A stretch of 63,721 bases of DNA, filler included, from Octopus bimaculoides (Eukaryota): NCBI RefSeq assembly GCF_001194135.2. It is 7 parts of 6 records of this genome, joined end to end, with 100 filler letters (N's around TTAATTAATTAA, not from the genome) between each part and the next. Parts side by side here need not be neighbours in the genome. Positions count along the whole stretch, not along the records: positions 52,540 to 62,300 come from NC_068984.1; 6 more parts are not named here. One strand, given 5' to 3'. Within the stretch, counting starts at the first letter, position 1. Each line of letters starts with the position of its first letter. Positions 11,605-62,400 of this stretch are shown here, piece by piece. Both the position numbers and the translations under genes were made by a program. Under the pieces are notes generated by a model. That model was not told the origin of the DNA. It was given only the letters and a program-made list of their open reading frames with translations, and made no database searches.

Positions 11605-14261
11605 CAGGTATGAATGTTGGTATGCATGCATGTATATTTAAATATACTTATGTATGCATTTATGTGTGTGTGTGTTTGTGTGGTGTAAGTGCTTATGTGT
11701 GTGACTCTAGTTTATGTCTGTATCTCAAACATATTCAATGTAGATAGATTTACATATAGTTTTCAACACTCACGCCGTCGTAGAGAACTCGATTATGTAA
11801 GTATATATATTTATTCTTTGCAGACAATGAAAAGCATGTAATGTATCCTGACAGGTTTTATGGCTTGTTGGTTAATCATCAGGGCATAAGTTACCTCCCA
11901 TCATAAGCTACCTCCCTTTTAGAAAGATAAATTACAGGAATCAGCGGTTTTTTTTTTCTATAAAACTAACATTTTTATATCACCTATCTCTTAACGTATT
12001 GACGGAAGTGCAATTCCGTGAAATATTCACGTTTATTTATGTAGCAGATATATGCAGCTTAACTAAAGGTTGTATCATATGCACGGGATATTTTTCATGG
12101 GTAAAAATTAAAAAATAAGAGTGAATAGTTATTTTATGAGTGCTATGTATTAAGTCTATAAAACTCTGCATAAAATATCTAAAGTGTATCTAAAATGTGC
12201 ATTAAATAAGCATCATATTCCAGTTTCTTTTTTAAATGAGTCGCAAATGAGCGACTATCTTTCCATACAGACACGATACTGGCTACGCTTTCAAGTTTTT
12301 TTGATGAAGTTTTCAGAAATTGCCCAATAAGTTTACCATTAATTTCGTGAAATATTCACGGGTCCCGCTAGTTTAAATTTAATTGGCAAAATATGACCAT
12401 CTTCAAATATAACAATATCTGTTTCAACACACGATTTCGCATAAAGAATCTTGCAAAGCAAATATATAAAAGTAAAAAAATATTATCATAACGATTATTT
12501 GCCATGCTAAAATATACACAGCTTTTATTGAAAACACATGGAACAGCCTCCGTATCCTATTCAAATCATCGCTGTCATTTAGTCAGAAGACGTCTGGCCA
12601 ATCGGTTTGAACATATGCGACAGCATACATTGATCTATATTCTGAGATACACATACGTGAAGCAACAAGATATAAACACTGATATTCGTATGGTGTATGT
12701 GACGAAATTAGTTACAGGAAACGGGCTCAATACGACGTTTAAGACCGAGAAGAAATATTATTAACCGCGTAATTCGTAAAAGTGTCGAGGAAGACTTTCG
12801 CTTATACATCGTATGAAATGATAATGTCTGTGTGTCAGTGTGTGGGTGTGATCACGGGCGCATATATATATATGCATGTTTATATTTACATTCGTATAGG
12901 GTATTTGGACTATGCATAAATAGATACATACATAGACACACACACATACACACACACACACACACACAAATATATATATATATGCATGTGCCAATACGGG
13001 TACGGGTACACTTGCTCGCCTGTGCTTGCATGCTACGTAGATCTGTTTGCATATGCTAATTTCATTGACAAAAAATAAGATTATATACGTTGATATATGC
13101 ATAGAGCTATGTGTCATTTCTATATACGTATGCATATNNNNNNNNNNNNNNNNNNNNNNNNNNNNNNNNNNNNNNNNNNNNNNNNNNNNNNNNNNNNNNN
13201 NNNNNNNNNNNNNNNNNNNNNNNNNNNNNNNNNNNNNNNNNNNNNNNNNNNNNNNNNNNNNNNNNNNNNNNNNNNNNNNNNNNNNNNNNNNNNNNNNNNN
13301 NNNNNNNNNNNNNNNNNNNNNNNNNNNNNNNNNNNNNNNNNNNNNNNNNNNNNNNNNNNNNNNNNNNNNNNNNNNNNNNNNNNNNNNNNNNNNNNNNNNN
13401 NNNNNNNNNNNNNNNNNNNNNNNNNNNNNNNNNNNNNNNNNNNNNNNNNNNNNNNNNNNNNNNNNNNNNNNNNNNNNNNNNNNNNNNNNNNNNNNNNNNN
13501 NNNNNNNNNNNNNNNNNNNNNNNNNNNNNNNNNNNNNNNNNNNNNNNNNNNNNNNNNNNNNNNNNNNNNNNNNNNNNNNNNNNNNNNNNNNNNNNNNNNN
13601 NNNNNNNNNNNNNNNNNNNNNNNNNNNNNNNNNNNNNNNNNNNNNNNNNNNNNNNNNNNNNNNNNNNNNNNNNNNNNTATATATATATATATATGCATAT
13701 ATATATCCTTTATTATCTTCTTCATGATGCGAAGATTCTGTCTCTATTTAAACAACTGAGTTTTTTTTTAGACATCATGGCTGTCGTTAACGTTACAGGG
13801 TCTAAGCTGAGGTCACAATACAAAGTATTGCCTTCCAACACTAGTATCTGACGCAGCAAACTCGCCGTCATCATGATATATTACTGTACCTTTCTAATGT
13901 CGTCTACTTCAATATTGTTACTTGCTTTCATTATTGTTTGAATTTTGTTTTTCTTCCATTTTTTTTTCCTGGGTCTGAATTAAATAAGCTTCTTGGCCGG
14001 CTGATTCTGCGTTTCATACTTATACTTACATACTACATACATACTTGCTTACACAAACACACACACGTATGTATGTATATATATATATGTATATATGTTT
14101 GTATGTACGTACGTCTGTATATTATTCCTCTCCTTTTATCATTTTCTATCGCATCTACATAAACCAAATAGAATCGATTTACGCGGAAAATATAAAAGCC
14201 AGTAGGATATTATACTTTCGCCATTTCTATTATATATTTTCTCCAGCAATATTTTTGGTGG

Positions 14262-22973: not shown

Positions 22974-23055
22974 GATGGTAATGATGATGATGATGGTGAT
23001 GATGATGATGATGGTGATGGTGATGATGATGGTGATGATGATGATGATGATACTA
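22825..23055. repeat. Compound (AAT)n/(GAT)n/(GGT) microsatellite
   Basis: Direct inspection. Confidence 0.95.
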
Positions 23056-52407: not shown

Positions 52408-52809
52408 TTATATATACGTACGTATATATATATATATATNNNNNNNNNNNNNNNNNNNNNNNNNNNNNNNNNNNNNNNNNNNNTTAATTAATTAANNNNN
52501 NNNNNNNNNNNNNNNNNNNNNNNNNNNNNNNNNNNNNNNATATATATATATATATATATATACACACAAACATGGATGTTATGTGTGTGTGCGCGCGTGT
52601 AAAATAAAATTATATTCGTATTCTTCATCCGTGTGTGTCAAAAACTAAATAGCAGCAGCAGCAGCAGCAGCCAGCCAAGACTTATTTTTTTTCTCCACAT
52701 ACGACGACTAAGTAACAATACTGATATCAAGGAACTGGTGTCGCTAAAATGGCTATAAATATGAATGTGACGATGCCAGTTGTCTGCGTAAGTGCTTGCT
52801 GTGTGTGTG

Positions 52810-52854
52810 TCCACTACGGCTATTACTACCATCTCCAACGCTACTACTACCACC

Positions 52855-52888
<34 letters not shown>

Positions 52889-54325
52889 TGGTGTGTATTA
52901 CCACCATTGCTTACTACTACTACTACTAATACTAATACTATTCATCATCGCTTACTACTACTATTAGTATTACTAGTATTATCACTTTCTTTACTACTTT
53001 ACTACTACTACTACTAGTAGTAGTAGTAGTAGTAGTAGTATCACTACCTTCATTACTACTACTACTACTACCACTACTATTACTAACCTACTGCTGTTAC
53101 CTCTGTGACTACTACTACTATTACTACAAACTAGTATAGAACTGCTGCTGTCAATACTGCTGCTACAACAACTATTACTACTATTATTACTACCACGAAA
53201 ACGGTTACTACTACTACTACTACTACTAATGATAATAATAATATTAATACTAATGCTAATACTAATACTATTATTGCTGCAACTAGTTCTATTATTACTG
53301 CATCAACTATCACTTCTACTGCNNNNNNNNNNNNNNNNNNNNNNNNNNNNNNNNNNNNNNNNNNNNNNNNNNNNNNNNNNNNNNNNNNNNNNNNNNNNNN
53401 NNNNNNNNNNNNNNNNNNNNNNNNNNNNNNNNNNNNNNNNNNNNNNNNNNNNNNNNNNNNNNNNNNNNNNNNNNNNNNNNNNNNNNNNNNNNNNNNNNNN
53501 NNNNNNNNNNNNNNNNNNNNNNNNNNNNNNNNNNNNNNNNNNNNNNNNNNNNNNNNNNNNNNNNNNNNNNNNNNNNNNNNNNNNNNNNNNNNNNNNNNNN
53601 NNNNNNNNNNNNNNNNNNNNNNNNNNNNNNNNNNNNNNNNNNNNNNNNNNNNNNNNNNNNNNNNNNNNNNNNNNNNNNNNNNNNNNNNNNNNNNNNNNNN
53701 NNNNNNNNNNNNNNNNNNNNNNNNNNNNNNNNNNNNNNNNNNNNNNNNNNNNNNNNNNNNNNNNNNNNNNNNNNNNNNNNNNNNNNNNNNNNNNNNNNNN
53801 NNNNNNNNNNNNNNNNNNNNNNNNNNNNNNNNNNNNNNNNNNNNNNNNNNNNNNNNNNNNNNNNNNNNNNNNNNNNNNNNNNNNNNNNNNNNNNNNNNNN
53901 NNNNNNNNNNNNNNNNNNNNNNNNNNNNNNNNNNNNNNNNNNNNNNNNNNNNNNNNNNNNNNNNNNNNNNNNNNNNNNNNNNNNNNNNNNNNNNNNNNNN
54001 NNNNNNNNNNNNNNNNNNNNNNNNNNNNNNNNNNNNNNNNNNNNNNNNNNNNNNNNNNNNNNNNNNNNNNNNNNNNNNNNNNNNNNNNNNNNNNNNNNNN
54101 NNNNNNNNNNNNNNNNNNNNNNNNNNNNNNNNNNNNNNNNNNNNGTGGTGGTGGTGGTGGTGGTGGTGGTAGCGATGACGGTGACGGTGGTGGTGGTTTC
54201 GGCAACGGCGGCGGTAGCGGCGGTGTTGGTGGTGCTAGTGGTGCTGGTGGTGGTGGAGGTGACGGTGGTGCTGGTGATGATGGTGGTGGTAGTGCTGCTG
54301 TTGTTACTGTTGCTGCTGCTGCTGC
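52810..54325. repeat. (CTA/ACT)n and (GGT/GCT)n low-complexity tracts around a gap
   Basis: Direct inspection. Confidence 0.9.
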
Positions 54326-54521
54326 GAATGAACTCTTCCCTGGAGAACAATATATAATCTCACAGAAACAAAGAGTAAAATAAAAAGATAATAATTATAA
54401 ATGGAAGCGTTGTTACCGAACCGCCTACACAAAAGGCCATTATTTCTTCCTAGTTGTATAACGTGAAGTAATGCATTGTGTACCATGTGCCAGACACAAA
54501 AAGTTGTATGTTTAAGACAGG

Positions 54522-54579
54522 ATGAAAATCCTAAACAGATCGATGCTAATCTTCGTTACTGTCGCAATCCACATCATAC
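54522..54579 (+). CDS. Tentative first coding exon (signal peptide) of the knottin precursor
   Basis: ATG at 54522 follows cag|g and reads MKILNRSMLIFVTVAIHII plus 1 nt. That gives the required phase 1, joining to ...IIHSGVSA|VP. The donor (C|GTGGAA) and acceptor are weak, so the true exon may lie in gap 53323-54144 or outside this piece. Confidence 0.2.
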
Positions 54580-55134
54580 GTGGAATGCGACAATAAGGGA
54601 ACTTCACATCGTATGTGAAGTTCTCTTTGCCGTAGTTTATCTAATAATTGATTAGGCCAGTGACTCTTAACCTTTGTGATAGCGCCCACTTGGGAGCGTA
54701 GTGAACTCACAAACAGGAAGTGAAGGAAATGTGAAGGGGTAGCAAATTACACGAGGGCACAAGGATCGTGGTATTCTTATATTATAAAATCTTTGTCAAA
54801 TTAAATTATGAATAGGATATTGTTTTATCAGTAAGCAGAAACTGGATTGATGATGCACGAAGGTCCATTATATAAGTTCTCGCTTTCATGAGTAATTTCT
54901 TTCAAAATTAACATAGGAATGCACTAACTCACTTAAATGTCTATATAAAAAAAAATTTAAGAAAGAGCGCGATACATTTTGGATTGGATAATATAAAAAA
55001 ATTATGGATAATAATAAACCACAGCATAAGATTATGTTTTATTAAAATAATTTTCAGTTAGTTGAACATGTGTAAAGCGCCTTTCAAGTAAACAAGGTGG
55101 GTACAAAACGAGTCGAAAACCACGAGTGTGAGCT

Positions 55135-55300
55135 TATTTACTCAAGCCCTTCGCTCCCTATGGAACATAGGCCATCGATAACTTTTCTCGACTGTTCTCG
55201 ACTCTGGACAGTCTTTTCTGCTTCTCTACTGTTGGATTGCGGCTTTTATCCCGCCTCCAGCTATTTTTAGGACGTCCTCTCTTCCACCTCCCTTATGGAG
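55135..55300 (-). mobile_element. RTE-type LINE 3' fragment
   Basis: Minus strand reads KRGRPKNSWRR..MAYVP* followed by a short tail. Confidence 0.6.
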
Positions 55301-55963
55301 TGTTTCCCCGAGGGAAAAGCTTCCTCTACCAGGTTTTGCTGGTTTTGAATTGTCATCGATGCTTTTATAACTTTGCCTTTTTCTAAGGAGAGGTTTTGGT
55401 CCTATACAAACCTATTTTTACTTCTAGGAAGAAGTAGTCAATATTAGTCTGACCTCTATCCATTGACTTGCTCAACATAGAATTTACCAGGAGTTTCTGC
55501 TTCGCTAGCATAGTTCTCAGGATCACTGCGATATGCAAGCTTCACCATAACAAAGGCCAGGCTTGTGGTGGACAGGTGTAAACAAATCTCACAAAATAAT
55601 ATATGAAATCGCATATACAAATGCACTAAACCAGTTGTTCCTATCGTTGCGATTTTTAGTGAAGTTATCACTTAAAAGTGCGCTCACTCACCCTTTCAAT
55701 TATTTCTATATCCTTGTGCATTATTACTCGATAGGCGTTGATTCTATACTGGGTTCATTAGTACCAATCCCAAAAAAGGAATACTGAAATCAATTTGATC
55801 AACTAAACCCTTCATGGTGGTGCCCCAGTATGGGTGCAGTCAAAGGACTGAAACAAGTAAAAGAATAAAAGAATGGGAAAATGGGGTTTTATTCGAAAGC
55901 TATTTCGCTACTGGTTCTAGCTGTTCAAAAGATCACGAAAAAGCTCCTTCTTTGGCTCATGAT

Positions 55964-56820
55964 ACGAGGTGAGCTCAAAACGTATCCGACTTATTTCTTC
56001 CCGCCAAAACTAATGCCGCGTGGGTAAAATCCTTTGAAAAGGAGTTGATGCTACCCTTCCTGCGCATGCAGGAAAATTTTCGTGCTGTTATGCCTAAAGT
56101 ACAAACGTGTAGTGCGCGCTCGTCGGATTTTCGCTTTCAGAGGTCGTAACCATAAACACATATCTTATCAACAGTGATGATGTTCTTCATGAAGCTTGAG
56201 TCGTGGTTTGCACAGTCCAAAATATCCTGAATGATTTACATGCGAAGTTGCTTGTGCTGCTCCACCAGTACATTATAGGCGAATTTCACCTACACTCCGC
56301 ATGCACAAATCCTCTGTTAGAATGGAAAACACTGTTCCTCTGCTTATTCCCATTTCGTGAGCAATTTCCTAGATTGTTACACAGCGATCTTCTATGACTA
56401 TTCGCCGAACCTTCTCAAACGTCTCCTCGTTTCGGTTTGCGAATGGCCTGCATGAGCGTGCCTCACTCTTCACTGAGATACGGGCCATGTTTGAAGCGGT
56501 TGTACGAGTCCTAGATCAGAGTTTCGCCCATGGCCTCATCGCCGAAGACTGAATTTTCTGAATGGTTTGAGTTTGAGTATCACCAAGCTTTTGGCAAAAC
56601 TTGATGCAACGTCTCTCGTCGATGAAAACGAAAACCCAACGAGCACATACTACATACCTGTGCTCTACGCATAACATAGGAACTGATGAAGCCTACTGGC
56701 ACGAAAATTTTCGAGCAGGCGCAGGAAGGGTAGCGTCACCATTAACCCGAAAGACTTTGCCCGTGTGGTATTAGTTTTGGCGGGGGAAATAAAGTAGGAT
56801 ACTTTTTGAACACATCTCGT
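55964..56820 (-). mobile_element. Non-autonomous mariner derivative with long (~175-200 bp) inverted ends and a decayed N-terminal transposase
   Basis: Minus strand reads, with stops and frameshifts, RCIKFCQKLGDTQTQTIQKI..FGDEAM..SVKSEARSCRP..EKVRRIVIEDRCVTI*EIAHEMGISRGTVFSILTEDLCMR..DSSFMKNIITVDKICVYGYD (mariner HTH to first catalytic Asp region). Ends ACGAGGTGAGCTCAAAACGTATCC and its inverted counterpart. Confidence 0.85.
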
Positions 56821-56983
56821 TAAACTTATTTGACCTGAACTGCTGATATGGCTGTTGGTAAGGTACTTTGTGTGAACGTAAAAGACATGTAAAAGACATA
56901 CTCCCATCTAAGCAAGTCAATTTATATCAAAACAACCACTAAAACCAACTGCTTTTCTCTCTCTTTCTCACTCTCTTATGCAG

Positions 56984-57056
56984 ATAGTGGAGTCAGTGCA
57001 GTGCCGTCCCAGATGAAAGGCAAGCAGAACACTTTTGCTGCATCGGAGAATAACAT
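56984..57056 (+). CDS. Internal coding exon of the same precursor (end of signal peptide plus start of pro-region)
   Basis: Long polypyrimidine tract gcttttctctctctttctcactctcttatgCAG| and donor cat|GTAAGA. The 73-nt exon reads (xAT)SGVSAVPSQMKGKQNTFAASENN+AT. The final AT plus the first G of 60172 makes ATG in frame with the knottin exon (phase 1 in, phase 2 out). V-S-A|VP fits a signal peptidase site. Confidence 0.68.
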
Positions 57057-57409
57057 GTAAGAGCTTGTTGTTGTTGTTGTTGTTTTTGTTGATGATGATG
57101 ATGATGATGATGATATTTAGCACCGCATCCTCAGTCAATGCTGATTGAGCAGACCTATGATCAAAACTTAGATGTATTTTATTTAGTGCATTGTGCTACA
57201 TAATCCAATGAAATATTTTCGAAAAGACTGTTAGATTCGATTCGAGGTAAATTTCGGCTATTATTTCTAGCGCGCTTGGCAACTGCTATGGACTGCGTGT
57301 TTGCATATTTGGCTCATTGTTTCGGACCAAGCTTGTTGTCTAAAGCAGAAAAGTGATTTTTAAATGTATGTTTATATTCACAAACACACACACACACACA
57401 CACATAGTT

Positions 57410-57700
57410 GAAATTTACAGAAAAACAAAAGACGAAGACAGGTGTATAATCAATAAACAGGGGTATTCGTTTAACGCTCTGTAAGGTGAGAAAGTCTTTT
57501 ACGTTTTGAGCCTACGCTCTTCAACAGAAAGGAACACGAAGAAATAAACAGAGAGAGAATAAAAACCTTTTGGAGCTAGCGGTCAATCATGGCGGCTGGC
57601 TGGACAGAGGTAGTTAGACAGGAGAGCTAAGAAGAAGGGGAGATAGTAAAGTATTAGTGATCCCAAAACAAAGGTGCGCGTGCGTGTGTATGTGAGAGTG
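57410..57700 (-). mobile_element. Probable Penelope-like element terminal-repeat fragment carrying a degenerate minimal hammerhead-like motif
   Basis: Minus strand 57531-57496 reads CTTT-CTGTTGA-A-GAGC-GTAG-GCTC-AAAA-CG-TA-AAAG, the layout of Penelope-type minimal type-I hammerheads. Element boundaries are approximate. Confidence 0.45.
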
Positions 57701-58289
57701 TGTAAGTGTGGATAGGGGCTGGTGACTTTGACGTGTGGATTTGTGCGTGTGTGTGTGTGCGTGTGTAATGTGTGGATGTGTGGATGATGGTGTAGGTGCT
57801 GGGAAGTGGTCAGTGCTAGTGTGTGCGGGGTGGTGTGATGTGGTGTGGTGGTATGTGGTGTCGTGGTGTCGTGGTGTATTGTGACGGTGTTAGAGTGTGG
57901 GGTTGCGAGGGTGGTGAGTGGGGATGTGAGGGTGAGGATGAGGGGTGGGGCATGTGGGAGTGGGATGTGTGGGGNNNNNNNNNNNNNNNNNNNNNNNNNN
58001 NNNNNNNNNNNNNNNNNNNNNNNNNNNNNNNNNNNNNNNNNNNNNNNNNNNNNNNNNNNNNNNNNNNNNNNNNNNNNNNNNNNNNNNNNNNNNNNNNNNN
58101 NNNNNNNNNNNNNNNNNNNNNNNNNNNNNNNNNNNNNNNNNNNNNNNNNNNNNNNNNNNNNNNNNNNNNNNNNNNNNNNNNNNNNNNNNNNNNNNNNNNN
58201 NNNNNNNNNNNNNNNNNNNNNNNNNNNNNNNNNNNNNNNNNNNNNNNNNNNNNNNNNNNNNNNNNNNNNNNNNNNNNNNNNNNNNNNNN

Positions 58290-58522
58290 AAAAGAGAACA
58301 ACTACACCAAGCTACTGAGAAATTTACAGATACTCCACCCAGACTACAAGTTCAGATTCATACCCGTGATTGTTGGGGCATTGGGATATGTAACGAACTG
58401 CCTCAACAAAAACCTGGAAAAATTAGGGTTCTCAAAACCTGAAAGAAAAAGGCTGGTTAGAAGACTACAGATTTAAGCCATCAGTGGAACTGTAAAGATA
58501 TGTAAAACTTTCCAAAAATTTA
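58290..58522 (+). mobile_element. 3' end of a restriction-like-endonuclease LINE (R4/Dong-like) ORF
   Basis: KENNYTKLLRNLQILHPDYKFRFIPVIVGALGYV..LEKLG..RLQI*AISGTVKICKTF matches the C-terminal RLE pattern K..Y..L..IP.IVGALG. Confidence 0.75.
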
Positions 58523-58639
58523 ACACATAAATACATATGCATGCATCTAGACATAAAAACGCATCCATAAAACAAACATACAAATCTGCGCATACACTAA
58601 CACCAAATACTGCACACACACACATATGCACAAATACCT

Positions 58640-58875
58640 AGATGATGTTGATAAAAGTTCCAATGAAGGAGCCTTGAATCTATGTTAGAGTCCGGCTCTT
58701 TCTCTATGGACAAGAAATACAGAAATGAAACTGATTGATAACATACATACAAAAAAATACCTTGCTGTTGGTGTTGAAATTCCAATGAAGGAACCTTGGA
58801 TTCAGGTTAGAAACTGGCTCTTTCTCTATTGGCAAGGAATCTTGAAATAAAACTGAACAATGACATACATACATG
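58640..58875 (+). repeat. Two tandem ~110-bp units (probable LINE 3' UTR), with an inverted copy at 59845-59990
   Basis: Units share TTCCAATGAAGGA(G/A)CCTTG(A/G)AT..GGCTCTTTCTCTAT. The reverse complement of 59845-59990 aligns closely with the second unit. Confidence 0.75.
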
Positions 58876-60171
58876 CATACACACATACTGACAAAAACCT
58901 ACGTACATACATCATAATATATATATATATGTAAATATATCTGTCCATCAATGCACACATACACCTGCATGCCACACGCACACACACACAAACATTAACG
59001 TACATTAACGCACTCATATATTAAAAATCAATAGACTTTCTTGACTAATACCCCCACCCCTTGTTATTCTGTAGTGAACAGGCTTGAATTCTGCAAAAGA
59101 CCTAAATAACTCTCAGAGTATCCATTAATCCGTTCTCTCAACCTGTTAGCTATTCATACATAGATACATTTATATCTCTATTTGATTCAACAAAAAGAAA
59201 AATACACCCACTCCCCAATGCATGTGTATACAGCATACACATATATTTACATGCATAAAAAACGTCGATTAGTGCATTCATTATATCAATGCAAACAGAC
59301 GCTCATACTCATATGCTCATACCTACAAAATAACTGCACACACTCACACCCATGCAAATATCCACTGTCATATATGCACTCATAGACCCACACTTATTTA
59401 CAAATCTCTGGATTATCTATATTCAGACAAAGAGACCATACCACGCTGTTTGTGATAAGTTTGAATTCTGCCAAGAAGAATTTTAATAAACCCCAAGGAA
59501 AACATATGTACGATCTGCAAGCACACACGCTGTCAGCGACCAATGTAAATATGCAAGCCTATAGTAAATTTAACTCTATAGTATTGTTACTGCTACATAA
59601 ATTGCAACGATGGAGCCGTTTTCCTCATGCATATAGTTGCATATTTAGACATGCTCATATATATTTAAAGGATAAACTTCTGGAAAGTTTTACAGATTTT
59701 TACAGTTTCAATGATGGATTCGATTTGTAATCTTCGAATTATTTTTCCCTTTCTGGTTTTCAGGAGCTTAATTTTTCAAGACTAGTATTTTGGCAGTGTT
59801 ACATATCCTGGGATCCCAATAATTACAGGTAAAAACCTGAACTTGTATGTATGTATGTTATTATTCAGTTTATTTCAAGATTTCTTGCCAATTGAGATAG
59901 AACCAGTTTCTAACCGAGATCCAAGGTTTCTTCATTGGAATTTCAACATCAACAACAGGGTATTTTTGTTTTTATGTATGAATGTATGTATGTATGAACA
60001 GATTTGTATGTTTTATGTATGTCTTTTCATGCATATAGTTACATATATAGACACGTATGTATGTATGTATGTATGTATGTATGTATGTATGTATGTATGT
60101 ATGCATGTATGTATGTATGTATGTATGTATGTGTGTATAAAACTAATACTCTTATACATTCTGTTTACTAG

Positions 60172-60397
60172 GGAGCAACAAACTCCACGGTCGGTCATCA
60201 GTTCAGCAGCTGACGCTATGAACAGGAGGGATTTCGACTACTACAGTACCACATCTTTTTACGGTTACCCAGATGGGAAACGAGGTTTCTTTGAATGCAG
60301 ACCAGCTGGCAACCGATGTAGTTTCCTGCAAAGATGCTGTGGCGCTTTAAGATGCGATCGTGAGAAATTCTTCCACTTTTTCGGTCGCTGTTATTAA
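60172..60397 (+). CDS. Terminal coding exon of a secreted knottin (ICK) prepropeptide: pro-region, RR site, Tyr-rich peptide, GKR site, 37-aa six-Cys mature peptide
   Basis: Acceptor ctgtttactAG|g (AG at 60170-60171), branch-point-like CTAAT at ~60143. Reads (g)EQQTPRSVISSAADAMNRRDFDYYSTTSFYGYPDGKRGFFECRPAGNRCSFLQRCCGALRCDREKFFHFFGRCY* (TAA 60395-60397). Cys spacing C-x6-C-x5-CC-x4-C-x11-C is the ICK framework, directly after a dibasic KR. It is non-repetitive sequence between microsatellites. Confidence 0.82.
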
Positions 60398-60617
60398 ATT
60401 ATTCAAAACTTTGTCAAAATAACACTACGACAAAAGATGGAATCATGAAGAAAGAGCGACACACTGAACAAACAAGTGCCTAAATATTAAGGAACAGTGA
60501 GCAACAACATCATCATCATCATCTTTAACGCGATATAATACAGCTGCCCGTTCCTTCCACATCCATTTAATAGATAAATCGATGACTTGTGCCTAATTCG
60601 AGATTAGGATTTCGCAT

Positions 60618-60623
60618 AATAAA
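60618..60623 (+). terminator. Candidate polyadenylation signal of the knottin gene
   Basis: AATAAA ~220 nt after the stop codon; further AATAAA copies follow at ~60653 and ~60666. Confidence 0.3.
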
Positions 60624-60891
60624 AAAAAAACAATTGTAATGATCAATATTAAATAAATGATAATGAATAAAACTGATAACAATCGCTGTATATGAGAGAG
60701 AGAGAGGGAGAGAGAGAGATCGTGAGGAACTGTGAGATGGGGCACAGGTCACCAAGGGAGAGAAAGTAAGCTTAGCACTTAAGAATTTTGCGTGTGTGTG
60801 TGTGTTTGATAGCGTCAGACGTCATCCAATGATCATTGGGTGTCTAGACCTTGAACCGTAACACCCTGTTGTTGGTGGGTCGGCAGTGGTG

Positions 60892-60936
60892 GTAGAAGCA
60901 ACATTAGTAGAAGCAACATTAGTAGAAGCAACATTG
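60892..60936. repeat. 3 x 15-bp tandem repeat GTAGAAGCAACATT(A/G)
   Basis: Units at 60892, 60907 and 60922. Confidence 0.9.
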
Positions 60937-61136
60937 TGACTCAAAGGTCGATAGTTTCGTGTGTTATATACACTCTATGTACACGACAATTAAAAGACGA
61001 TTTAGTTAAACGATTTGGGCGAAGATGGAAAAGAAGGGTACAAGAAAGAAAGCATAAGCGCTTTGTGATGTGAGGTGTACAACAACATCGGATAGTCTGG
61101 TTGATATAGCGTGACTGATAAAATTATATATAACAC

Positions 61137-61187
<51 letters not shown>

Positions 61188-61289
61188 CATACATATATAT
61201 GTATATATATAGACTATATATACATGCGTGTGTATGTATATCTATACATTTATATATATATATATATTGAAACTCTATTCTCTCCAGTG

Positions 61290-61570
61290 ACCTCAACATT
61301 AGGTTCAAAATTCATCCAAGGCTAGGACCACGGGCCATACGTTCTCTACCCAATTCAGTATCACAACACATAAATACACTGCAACACAATTTCTTTTCCT
61401 CAAAAGGCTCTGCCCTATTTAACATTATTCCGAAACAGATCAAAGAGGAAAAAGGATCCCATCACCTTTAAACAAATCTGGACAAATTTCTCCGAGGAAT
61501 ACCAGATAAGCCACCTATACCTGAATACAACTCACTCAACAAGAACTCCCTACTCGAATTGACCATCATA
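61290..61570 (+). mobile_element. CR1/L2-group LINE ORF2 C-terminal fragment
   Basis: FSSKGSALFNIIPKQIKEEK..FKQNLDKFLRGIPDKPPIPEYNSLNKNSLLE, a typical CR1/L2-group 3' end. Confidence 0.7.
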
Positions 61571-61697
61571 CCACAAAACTTTACTTAAAAAAGATTTAAC
61601 AAATCCTATCAGGTGGTGCCATTAAGTTAGACATGGCCTGACCAAACTTTGGTCGAAACATATCTCAGTTATCTAAGTTATATATATATATTTGTGC

Positions 61698-61746
<49 letters not shown>

Positions 61747-62400
61747 TGTGTGTGTTTGTGTGTGTGTGTGTAACGCTACTCACTACTGGTTTTTTTACTC
61801 ATTTGTATAATATTCTTTGAATATTTTTTTGTGTGACATCTATTTCTGTTTCTCTTTCTTTGCCTCTCTTTTGCCTCCCTCTCACTCTCTTTCTCTCTCT
61901 TTCCCACTCTGATACTTTACTTCTTCCTTCGTTTTGATTTTCTATCTATCCTTCTCTTGTCTCCAGTCCTACAGGGCATTTCCCTTTGCGTAACCCCATG
62001 TCAGCCTGTCTTGCGGCCGCATGTTTTTTTTGTTTTTTGTATATGTATGTTTTATTTTGTCATTTTTGTTTTCGTCATTCTCCTGCACATTCGTTAGCTA
62101 TTCCCACTGGCTTTCTGCCACTGGTGCCACCAAGAGCGAACAGTATCAACCTTAAAGGCGTGAAATTGTAATGATTTCCTGGAGGGGGGGGGGCGTTGAC
62201 TGATGAGAAATAAGGTACGAATTTCTGTTTGTTATGCTTTTCTATTTCCGTTTGTTGTGTTTCGTTAAATTTTTGAAATATATATATATATATATATATA
62301 NNNNNNNNNNNNNNNNNNNNNNNNNNNNNNNNNNNNNNNNNNNNTTAATTAATTAANNNNNNNNNNNNNNNNNNNNNNNNNNNNNNNNNNNNNNNNNNNN

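Follow-up and report, generated by a model that had tools for sequence, protein, structure and literature searches.

A three-exon Octopus gene encoding a putative secreted six-cysteine knottin, with likeness to the prohormone-3-related peptides

The stretch of Octopus bimaculoides DNA that was analysed (the window; 63,721 nucleotides, filler included; assembly GCF_001194135.2) contains a piece of record NC_068984.1, at positions 52,540 to 62,300, in which two exons of a spliced gene end in the coding sequence of a six-cysteine, knottin-type peptide (Table 1). RNA contigs were aligned to the window over positions 60150-60700 and 56600-57085, and were obtained from the window species (organism A; libraries X11, X12 and X15) and from two other Octopus species (organisms B and C). 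The transcript consists of three exons, and the splice junctions, with the acceptor at 60172, are identical in the contigs of all three organisms. The unaligned 5' parts of the exon 3 contigs of X11, X12 and X15 read …GAACACTTTTGCTGCATCGGAGAATAACAT, which is located at 57027-57056, at the end of exon 2. Exon 2 is bordered by an acceptor AG (56982-3) and the donor GTAAGA (57057); it completes an Asn codon, encodes SGVSAVPSQMKGKQNTFAASENN and supplies the first two bases of a Met codon, and within it the signal peptide ends and the propeptide begins. Its homologue in the O. vulgaris locus L001 is found at 22976-23047. The loose ends of the exon 2 contigs read …TCTTCATCCTCAATGCAATGGTAACATTCA on the 5' side, toward exon 1, and GAGCAACAAACTCC… on the 3' side, toward exon 3. 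Translated, the former gives FILNAMVTF, with which the signal-peptide exon of the O. vulgaris orthologue ends. A search of the window for exon 1 with the transcript loose-end sequence gave no match at three or fewer mismatches, and as this exon is absent from the NC_068984.1 piece it is placed upstream of position 52540; in O. vulgaris exon 1 lies approximately 13 kb upstream of exon 2. The first intron is in phase 1 and the second in phase 2. The latter holds an assembly gap (57975-58289), so that its length is uncertain, as well as a (GTAT)21 microsatellite (60055-60138).

A sequence-only reading of this DNA had described a 37-residue peptide following G-K-R, hidden at the end of an open reading frame (ORF) that otherwise appeared to be microsatellite junk, in an exon beginning at 60172. 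Each of these points holds. Translation of 60284-60397 yields the peptide GFFECRPAGNRCSFLQRCCGALRCDREKFFHFFGRCY with the expected spacing, C-x6-C-x5-CC-x4-C-x11-C, while the mechanically derived ORF (59843-60397; 184 codons) is an artefact upstream of 60172, because there it is translated through the intronic (GTAT)21 array. The exon start coincides exactly with the acceptor used in the contigs of three species, and the spliced transcript across 60172-60397, which had been set beforehand as a test, was found with exon 2 joined to exon 3. An additional candidate exon, proposed at about 59880-59960, was absent from every transcript contig and can be discarded.

Table 1. Features of the knottin precursor gene in the window, with the evidence for each.
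Feature	Position	Strand	Evidence or remark
Exon 2 (73 nt)	56984..57056	+	RNA contigs X11, X12 and X15 align from 56984 to 57056/7
Intron 2 (phase 2, GT…AG)	57057..60171	+	6/6 RNA contigs (3 species) join 57056 straight to 60172
Exon 3 start, propeptide (M)EQQTPRSVISSAADAMN	60172..60223	+	Contigs begin at 60172, acceptor …tttactAG|G; conserved in O. vulgaris, partly in Argonauta
R-R dibasic site	60224..60229	+	Translation; present in Octopus species, P-I in Argonauta
Acidic Tyr-rich linker peptide DFDYYSTTSFYGYPD	60230..60274	+	Translation and alignment; computed pI 4.05
G-K-R, amidation donor Gly and prohormone-convertase dibasic site	60275..60283	+	Directly precedes the six-Cys peptide; G-K-K in Argonauta
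Mature 37-aa six-Cys knottin-type peptide	60284..60394	+	Translation, conservation, structural model
Stop codon TAA	60395..60397	+	Sequence
3' untranslated region of short isoform	60398..60649	+	AATAAA at 60618-60623; contig ends at 60643-60649

The knottin has a computed reduced mass of 4429 Da, an isoelectric point (pI) of 8.96 and a net charge of approximately +4, and 22 % of its residues are aromatic. It would carry a free C-terminus, as it ends in …GRCY directly before the stop codon and thus lacks a C-terminal Gly. By inspection, the N-termini of the three available orthologues (P0001 of Argonauta hians, P0002 of O. vulgaris, and P0003, described below) are hydrophobic and signal-like. 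Together with the …FILNAMVTF of the window transcript, this agrees with the secreted precursor anticipated from the sequence alone. The G-K-K/R site and the YGYPD motif before it are kept in all three octopods aligned (the window species, O. vulgaris and Argonauta). Considering the following Gly and dibasic site, the linker peptide DFDYYSTTSFYGYPD is probably C-terminally amidated in Octopus. The corresponding amidated peptide of Argonauta would be longer, because the R-R site that precedes it in Octopus is replaced by P-I.

A word-indexed protein search retrieved two proteins, a complete 119-aa "hypothetical protein" of A. hians (P0001) and a 91-aa gene model of O. vulgaris (P0002), while no protein of the window species turned up. 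P0002 has the N-terminus in common, and ends in VLISFMEQ. The O. vulgaris locus L001 nevertheless contains an intact knottin exon, with 92 % protein identity to that of the window. The gene model leaves exon 3 at a cryptic GT situated exactly at KR|G (L001 ~31650; window equivalent 60283/60284) and joins an exon at L001 55011-55034, about 23 kb downstream, which encodes VLISFMEQ and a stop codon, so that the knottin is deleted. As the RNA contigs of organism B read straight through the cryptic GT, P0002 is considered to be mis-annotated, and the present data do not show it as an isoform. The knottin thus appears to be unannotated or mis-annotated in Octopus, in line with the earlier suggestion that automated annotation had missed it.

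All six cysteines are conserved in the four cephalopod sequences (window species, O. vulgaris L001, A. hians P0001 and P0003), and conservation in related octopods had been named in the sequence-only reading as decisive for its proposal. In the three-octopod alignment the invariant elements are the six cysteines and the motifs YGYPDGK, GFFEC, QRCCG and KFFHFFG. Changes are found in loops 1, 4 and 5 (N/D, A/S, D/N/H and E/M/D). The mature peptide of organism C is identical to that of the window, with three synonymous and one non-synonymous changes between the two sequences. Between Octopus and Argonauta, 16 of approximately 21 synonymous sites differ, which amounts to saturation, while the non-synonymous divergence (dN) is only 0.16, and strong purifying selection can thus be deduced. 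The 3' untranslated region (3'UTR) shares 97 % identity with that of O. vulgaris. The Argonauta gene likewise has three exons, with intron phases as in Octopus. Each of the stretches searched (the 9.8-kb window piece, L001 and the octopod locus L002) contains one copy only; the gene coordinates in L002 are 10057, 11770-11844 and 14907.

Expression is strong, yet restricted to particular libraries. Word depth reaches approximately 430 in X11 and X12 and 200-290 in X29 and X30, while no transcript was found in X21, a sister library from the same study, and zero reads were counted in three other large RNA libraries, of which about 12 million reads were sampled per library. The 3' ends fall into two classes. 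The contigs of X15, X25 and X29 stop at 60649, 60644 and 60643, respectively, 20-26 nt past the AATAAA, while those of X11, X12 and X30 run beyond 60700 and, by their length, to about 61160, at the edge of an (AT)n array (61141-61267). This suggests either alternative polyadenylation or read-through.

The relatives of the peptide were sought with several profile and fold comparisons, including an exhaustive HMMER search that covered 1.84 billion protein representatives. Among the sequences recovered is P0003 (E=1e-13), a 125-aa precursor ending in …DYDRPFFQCRELGTRCSYVQRCCGSLRCRREKFYYFFGRCY and a stop codon, which occurs on 99 Logan RNA contigs and has its source in runs SRR25158142 and SRR29271464. 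It presumably derives from another cephalopod lineage, as its pro-region is far more divergent than that of Argonauta. A second match, P0008 (E=4.9e-6), is a 104-aa protein of the annelid Owenia fusiformis (CAH1794238.1), with two Cys-rich domains in tandem as well as a signal peptide and a K-R site. The loops of its domain 1 match those of the octopus peptide in length (6/5/0/4/11), and the two are 49 % identical. Word-indexed protein searches returned nothing at E ≤ 0.1 with a 17-sequence family alignment, and only P0003 itself when P0003 was the query. Two further proteins from marine metatranscriptomes (P0004 and P0005) consist of tandem knottin units of the form …KC-x6-C-x5-KCCG-x3-C-x10-GKTC…, with the same framework and motifs and no Pfam match, and look like poly-knottin precursors of a marine eukaryote. 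Identity with clionin, a Cys-rich peptide of cephalopods, was ruled out on the basis of its different Cys pattern.

The closest family identified is that of the "prohormone-3-related" precursors, which have been reported only from nemerteans and one brachiopod, Laqueus (PMC8557429, Thiel et al. 2021). Domain 1 of these precursors is exemplified by C-IPLGSP-C-GYTLFHR-CC-GQLR-C-HIVSIWRKGY-C (PMC8557429 supplement). Alignment of profiles with hhalign matched the four cephalopod peptides to 15 prohormone-3-related sequences with 94.5 % probability (E=7.8e-8), and the Owenia protein to both domains of the same family with 98 % probability (E=1.7e-13). Because Cys-rich peptides can match by framework alone, shuffle controls were run in which the non-Cys residues were permuted and the Cys positions kept fixed. 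The cephalopod peptides score 22-25 bits against the prohormone-3-related hidden Markov model (HMM), while the Cys-fixed decoys score 6.6±3.5 bits and 2/20000 of them reach the real score. Conversely, the cephalopod HMM gives 39.7 bits for Owenia domain 1, a value which 0/5000 decoys reach. The likeness to the prohormone-3-related family thus appears to exceed the shared Cys framework significantly. Lower scores were obtained for the cephalopod peptides with the HMMs of other families: 13.5-20 bits for CLCCY (a rough model of three sequences only), 8-12 bits for prohormone-3 domain 1, 5-13 bits for the CCWamide/agatoxin-like peptides and 3-5 bits for CP3-r. The octopod and prohormone-3-related/Owenia precursors are alike in their signal peptide, a pro-region ending in a dibasic site and a knottin-type domain thereafter, as well as in the motif C-x3-G-x2-C…(R/K)CCG-x-L-x-C-(H/x)-(K/R)…aromatic…G-x-C. 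They differ in the pro-region, which is short in the prohormone-3-related and Owenia precursors and long in the octopods, where it carries the conserved YGYPD-G-K-K/R.

The Pfam family UPF0506 (PF11703) was matched above its cutoff by P0008, and by twelve of the thirteen two-domain prohormone-3-related sequences (best E 1.2e-8), so that "prohormone-3-related" and UPF0506 can be equated. The two-domain sequences also match Dickkopf_N weakly. The name UPF0506 was not met in PMC8557429 by term searches, none of which was aimed at that name, and in the searchable literature it occurs in flatworm transcriptome and secretome papers and in one mosquito transcriptome preprint. Considering that the stop codon follows one residue after the sixth Cys, the octopod peptide consists of a single domain. 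Judged by its sequence, it is filed here as a putative single-domain relative of prohormone-3-related domain 1, and not as a full member of that family.

The fold suggested by the Cys framework, an inhibitor cystine knot (ICK), in which disulfides would pair the cysteines 1-4, 2-5 and 3-6 and the third bond would thread the ring, was modelled with AlphaFold2 (AF2). With a four-sequence alignment the mean predicted local distance difference test (pLDDT) score was 67, and three short strands were placed at residues 11-13, 24-26 and 33-36; a two-sequence alignment gave a pLDDT of 53, too poor for use. Knottins made up seven of the eight best Foldseek matches in the PDB, at TM-scores of 0.46-0.58, but none of these was significant (E≥1.3), as is usual for a query of 37 residues. 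They include Momordica knottins, psalmotoxin-1, Hm-3, J-atracotoxin, robustoxin and LaIT1. The model and its neighbours are consistent with the predicted ICK fold.

On these grounds the locus is best read, with reasonable but far from complete confidence, as a genuine Octopus gene of three exons, the product of which is a small secreted prepropeptide (about 120 aa) that yields a C-terminal knottin, kin to the prohormone-3-related peptides and serving as an endogenous signal. The parts of this reading differ in strength: that the gene encodes a real secreted knottin precursor is very probable, while the chances for and against a neuroendocrine role are about even. Following removal of the signal peptide, a prohormone-convertase-type enzyme would cut after K-R and release the C-terminal knottin, a cationic and aromatic-rich peptide of about 4.4 kDa with three disulfides. 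In Octopus an additional cut at R-R, with the action of carboxypeptidase and amidating enzyme on the exposed Gly, would give DFDYYSTTSFYGYPD-NH2. The knottin itself would be related, as a single domain, to domain 1 of the spiralian prohormone-3-related (UPF0506) peptides, which have two domains, and would bind a membrane receptor or ion channel, as other knottins do. It would most likely serve as an endogenous secreted ligand, produced by specialised secretory or neuroendocrine cells, and is less likely to be a component of venom, because the gene is present as a single copy in the DNA searched and evolves under purifying selection, its processing is prohormone-style and its relatives stem from neuropeptidome surveys. 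A further-reaching version, which is put forward tentatively and is rather less likely to be right than wrong, is that of a hitherto undescribed cephalopod neurohormone of the knottin type, released together with an amidated Tyr-rich peptide. It would form a branch with one domain only within an ancient protostome superfamily of ICK-type signals. This superfamily would include the prohormone-3-related/UPF0506, CLCCY and CCWamide/agatoxin-like peptides, for which no receptor is reported in the literature cited. If so, the knottin would be an endogenous ligand of an ion channel or receptor, and would belong to the kind of peptide that presumably gave rise, by recruitment, to the venom knottins.

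Several observations weigh against the main reading, that of an endogenous signal kin to the prohormone-3-related peptides. The confidence of the AF2 model is moderate and the Foldseek E-values are non-significant. The octopod precursors lack the two tandem Cys-rich domains (~12 Cys) of the prohormone-3-related family, with loops of 6/5/0/4/11 in a single domain as opposed to 6/7/0/4/10 in the two-domain nemertean and brachiopod precursors, and neither the octopod sequences nor P0003 match UPF0506 in Pfam. The CLCCY model, a rough one built from three sequences, falls short of that of the prohormone-3-related family by no more than a few bits. In the Owenia gene, domain 1 is interrupted by an intron and the phases are 2,2, whereas in octopods the domain is located wholly in the last exon and the phases are 1,2. 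P0003 has D-R-P in place of G-K-R, and K-R cleavage and amidation may thus be specific to octopods. Furthermore, the prohormone-3-related precursors themselves are called proneuropeptides by similarity only, without a known receptor or function (PMC8557429). The neuroendocrine assignment is putative, and the transcript may instead come from the salivary gland or skin.

Four other explanations were considered. That the ORF arose by chance, or that the transcript is non-coding and its Cys pattern meaningless, has a negligible probability. The microsatellite translation upstream of 60172 could be taken as a sign of it, but the spliced mRNA is abundant in three species, a signal peptide is present, and all six cysteines are kept among deeply diverged octopods in spite of saturated synonymous sites, by which this explanation is effectively refuted. 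A venom or salivary toxin, whereby a knottin of the posterior salivary gland acts on prey ion channels in the manner of O-conotoxins and spider gating modifiers, is improbable. The arrangement C-C-CC-C-C is the ICK framework of O-superfamily conotoxins (VI/VII) and of many spider ion-channel toxins, and the conotoxins resemble the octopod peptide in their signal-pro-mature precursor and molluscan origin too. The spider and remipede ICK toxins are alike in their predicted fold, with TM-scores of about 0.5 to several knottins, and Hm-3 and the remipede double-ICK Xt3a share the CC…L-x-C…G-x-C pattern. Spider toxins (Hm-3, psalmotoxin and robustoxin) are the best PDB neighbours by sequence or fold, and a cationic peptide with an aromatic patch, expressed very highly in few libraries, would suit a toxin. 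However, all sequence matches to such toxins are non-significant or below threshold. A profile combining the octopod and prohormone-3-related domains gave marginal PDB matches to Hm-3 (E=0.027) and Xt3a (E=0.042). The Pfam Conotoxin family (PF02950) reached 21.7 bits (E=4e-4; cutoff 25.1) in the mature region of Argonauta P0001 only, with no match for the Octopus sequences, and Toxin_12 (PF07740) reached 9.9-14.8 bits (E=0.045-1.5; cutoff 21 bits), with E=1.5 for the octopus peptide and 14.8 bits for that of Argonauta. The curated libraries contained no toxin family above threshold for the octopod peptides. The signal peptide does not, by inspection only, resemble the conserved O-superfamily signal. 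Venom gene families are typically expanded and fast-evolving, unlike the present gene, which is constrained where conotoxins are hypervariable, occurs as one copy in the DNA searched and yields an identical mature peptide in two Octopus species. In the titles and abstracts of the open-access literature on cephalopods, ICK peptides and salivary glands, no cephalopod venom study was met, and none of the open-access papers found describes ICK peptides from the saliva of cephalopods. Of the label "conotoxin/spider-toxin-like" given in the sequence-only reading, the Cys framework and predicted fold therefore stand, while the toxin families remain sub-threshold and the nearest relatives are the prohormone-3-related/UPF0506 peptides. 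Nothing was found that points to the venom function which it had offered as one option.

It is likewise improbable that the knottin serves in host defence, as an antimicrobial peptide, or has another non-neural secreted function, for example in skin, gill, haemocytes or egg coat. Its charge of about +4, pI of about 9 and 22 % aromatic residues are typical of membrane-active peptides, the top PDB sequence match, Hm-3, is described as membrane-active, and the transcript reaches very high levels in a few libraries but is missing from several. Nevertheless, it is flanked by a Gly-dibasic amidation-type site and a conserved YGYPD, no Pfam match to defensin or antimicrobial peptide families was obtained, and its nearest relatives were recovered in neuropeptidome surveys (PMC8557429). 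With regard to the flanking site, those of the Gly-dibasic type are more typical of prohormones that follow regulated secretion. The remaining explanation is an unlikely but serious one, namely that the likeness to the prohormone-3-related/UPF0506 peptides reflects convergence on the ICK core C-x6-C-x5-7-CCG-x3-C, and that the peptide belongs to a cephalopod-specific lineage or with the CLCCY or CCWamide/agatoxin-like peptides. The CLCCY peptides, which are putative neuropeptides of annelids, molluscs, phoronids and brachiopods, likewise have a C-x6-C-x6-(R)CCG-x3-C core after a KR site, and the score of their model (13.5-20 bits) is little below that of the prohormone-3-related family (22-25 bits). 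The CCWamide/agatoxin-like peptide (ALP; U8-agatoxin) precursors are similarly short and encoded by three exons, of which the first specifies the signal peptide and the last the mature Cys-rich peptide; their ICK-type core likewise contains a CC doublet. Their genes have intron phases 1 then 2 (PMC8557429 supplement 20), equal to those of Octopus and Argonauta, a match that may go back to an ancient common origin of ICK-type neuropeptide genes or be coincidental. The unlikeness to the Owenia gene structure and the differences in domain number and loop lengths would also be accounted for by convergence. On the other hand, the CCWamide/ALP peptides have eight Cys and an amidated aromatic C-terminus (PMC8557429), and the CLCCY peptides eight Cys, a loop 5 of seven residues and a C-terminal C-x-C extension, in contrast to the six Cys and free C-terminal Tyr or Ser of the octopod peptides. 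In the CCWamide/ALP genes the last intron interrupts the cleavage site, whereas in octopods this site is found 36-37 codons inside the last exon, and the CCWamide/ALP model gives only 5-13 bits. The identical loops, 49 % identity and 39.7 bits of Owenia domain 1, far above the Cys-fixed decoys, also argue against convergence.

A precursor with signal, pro-region and knottin is a well-known kind of object. Knottins are best known as venom toxins, and growing evidence, from the agatoxin-like peptides and CCWamides, indicates that they began as endogenous signalling peptides, the receptors of which are still unknown. Although the neuropeptide repertoire of cephalopods is considered well surveyed, fragments of the octopus, Argonauta and P0003 peptides were found in no searchable paper. 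The cephalopods thus gain an abundant and conserved knottin precursor, for which the gene models found either skip the knottin or are named "hypothetical". Furthermore, the peptide group of the nemerteans and one brachiopod is linked with the uncharacterised Pfam family UPF0506, which includes an annelid protein, and the domain is extended to the molluscs. The annotation error belongs to a recognisable class, combining a cryptic GT at a prohormone cleavage site with short exons and repeat-rich introns, and such errors probably hide other small secreted peptides in octopus genomes. The interest of the gene is moderate: it is abundant, conserved, hidden from annotation and directly testable, the peptide being small enough for synthesis, folding and assay.

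A number of minor features were observed in the piece and its transcripts. Two runs of N mark assembly gaps, at 53323-54144 and, inside intron 2, at 57975-58289. Tri-, di- and tetranucleotide microsatellites are dense, with repeats at 52841-53302, 54145-54294, 61141-61267 and 61700-61771. A scan of the 3'UTR for promoters and terminators of prokaryote type, which is irrelevant to this DNA, returned nothing. Only part of the stretch is present in runs X16, X18 and X19 of one 2022 study (shares of 0.51-0.73). The X16 contig, of low depth, covers window positions 60252-60619, the last ~370 nt before the poly(A) signal. This is the pattern expected of 3'-tag libraries of the single-cell type, and a public assignment of the gene to a cell type may therefore already exist. 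At position 60455, in the 3'UTR, the window has A, as do X15 and X16, while X11 and X12, of the same species, and organisms B and C have G. A-to-I editing was rejected as the cause, as the O. vulgaris genome also has G at this position; a polymorphism with G as the ancestral state is likelier.

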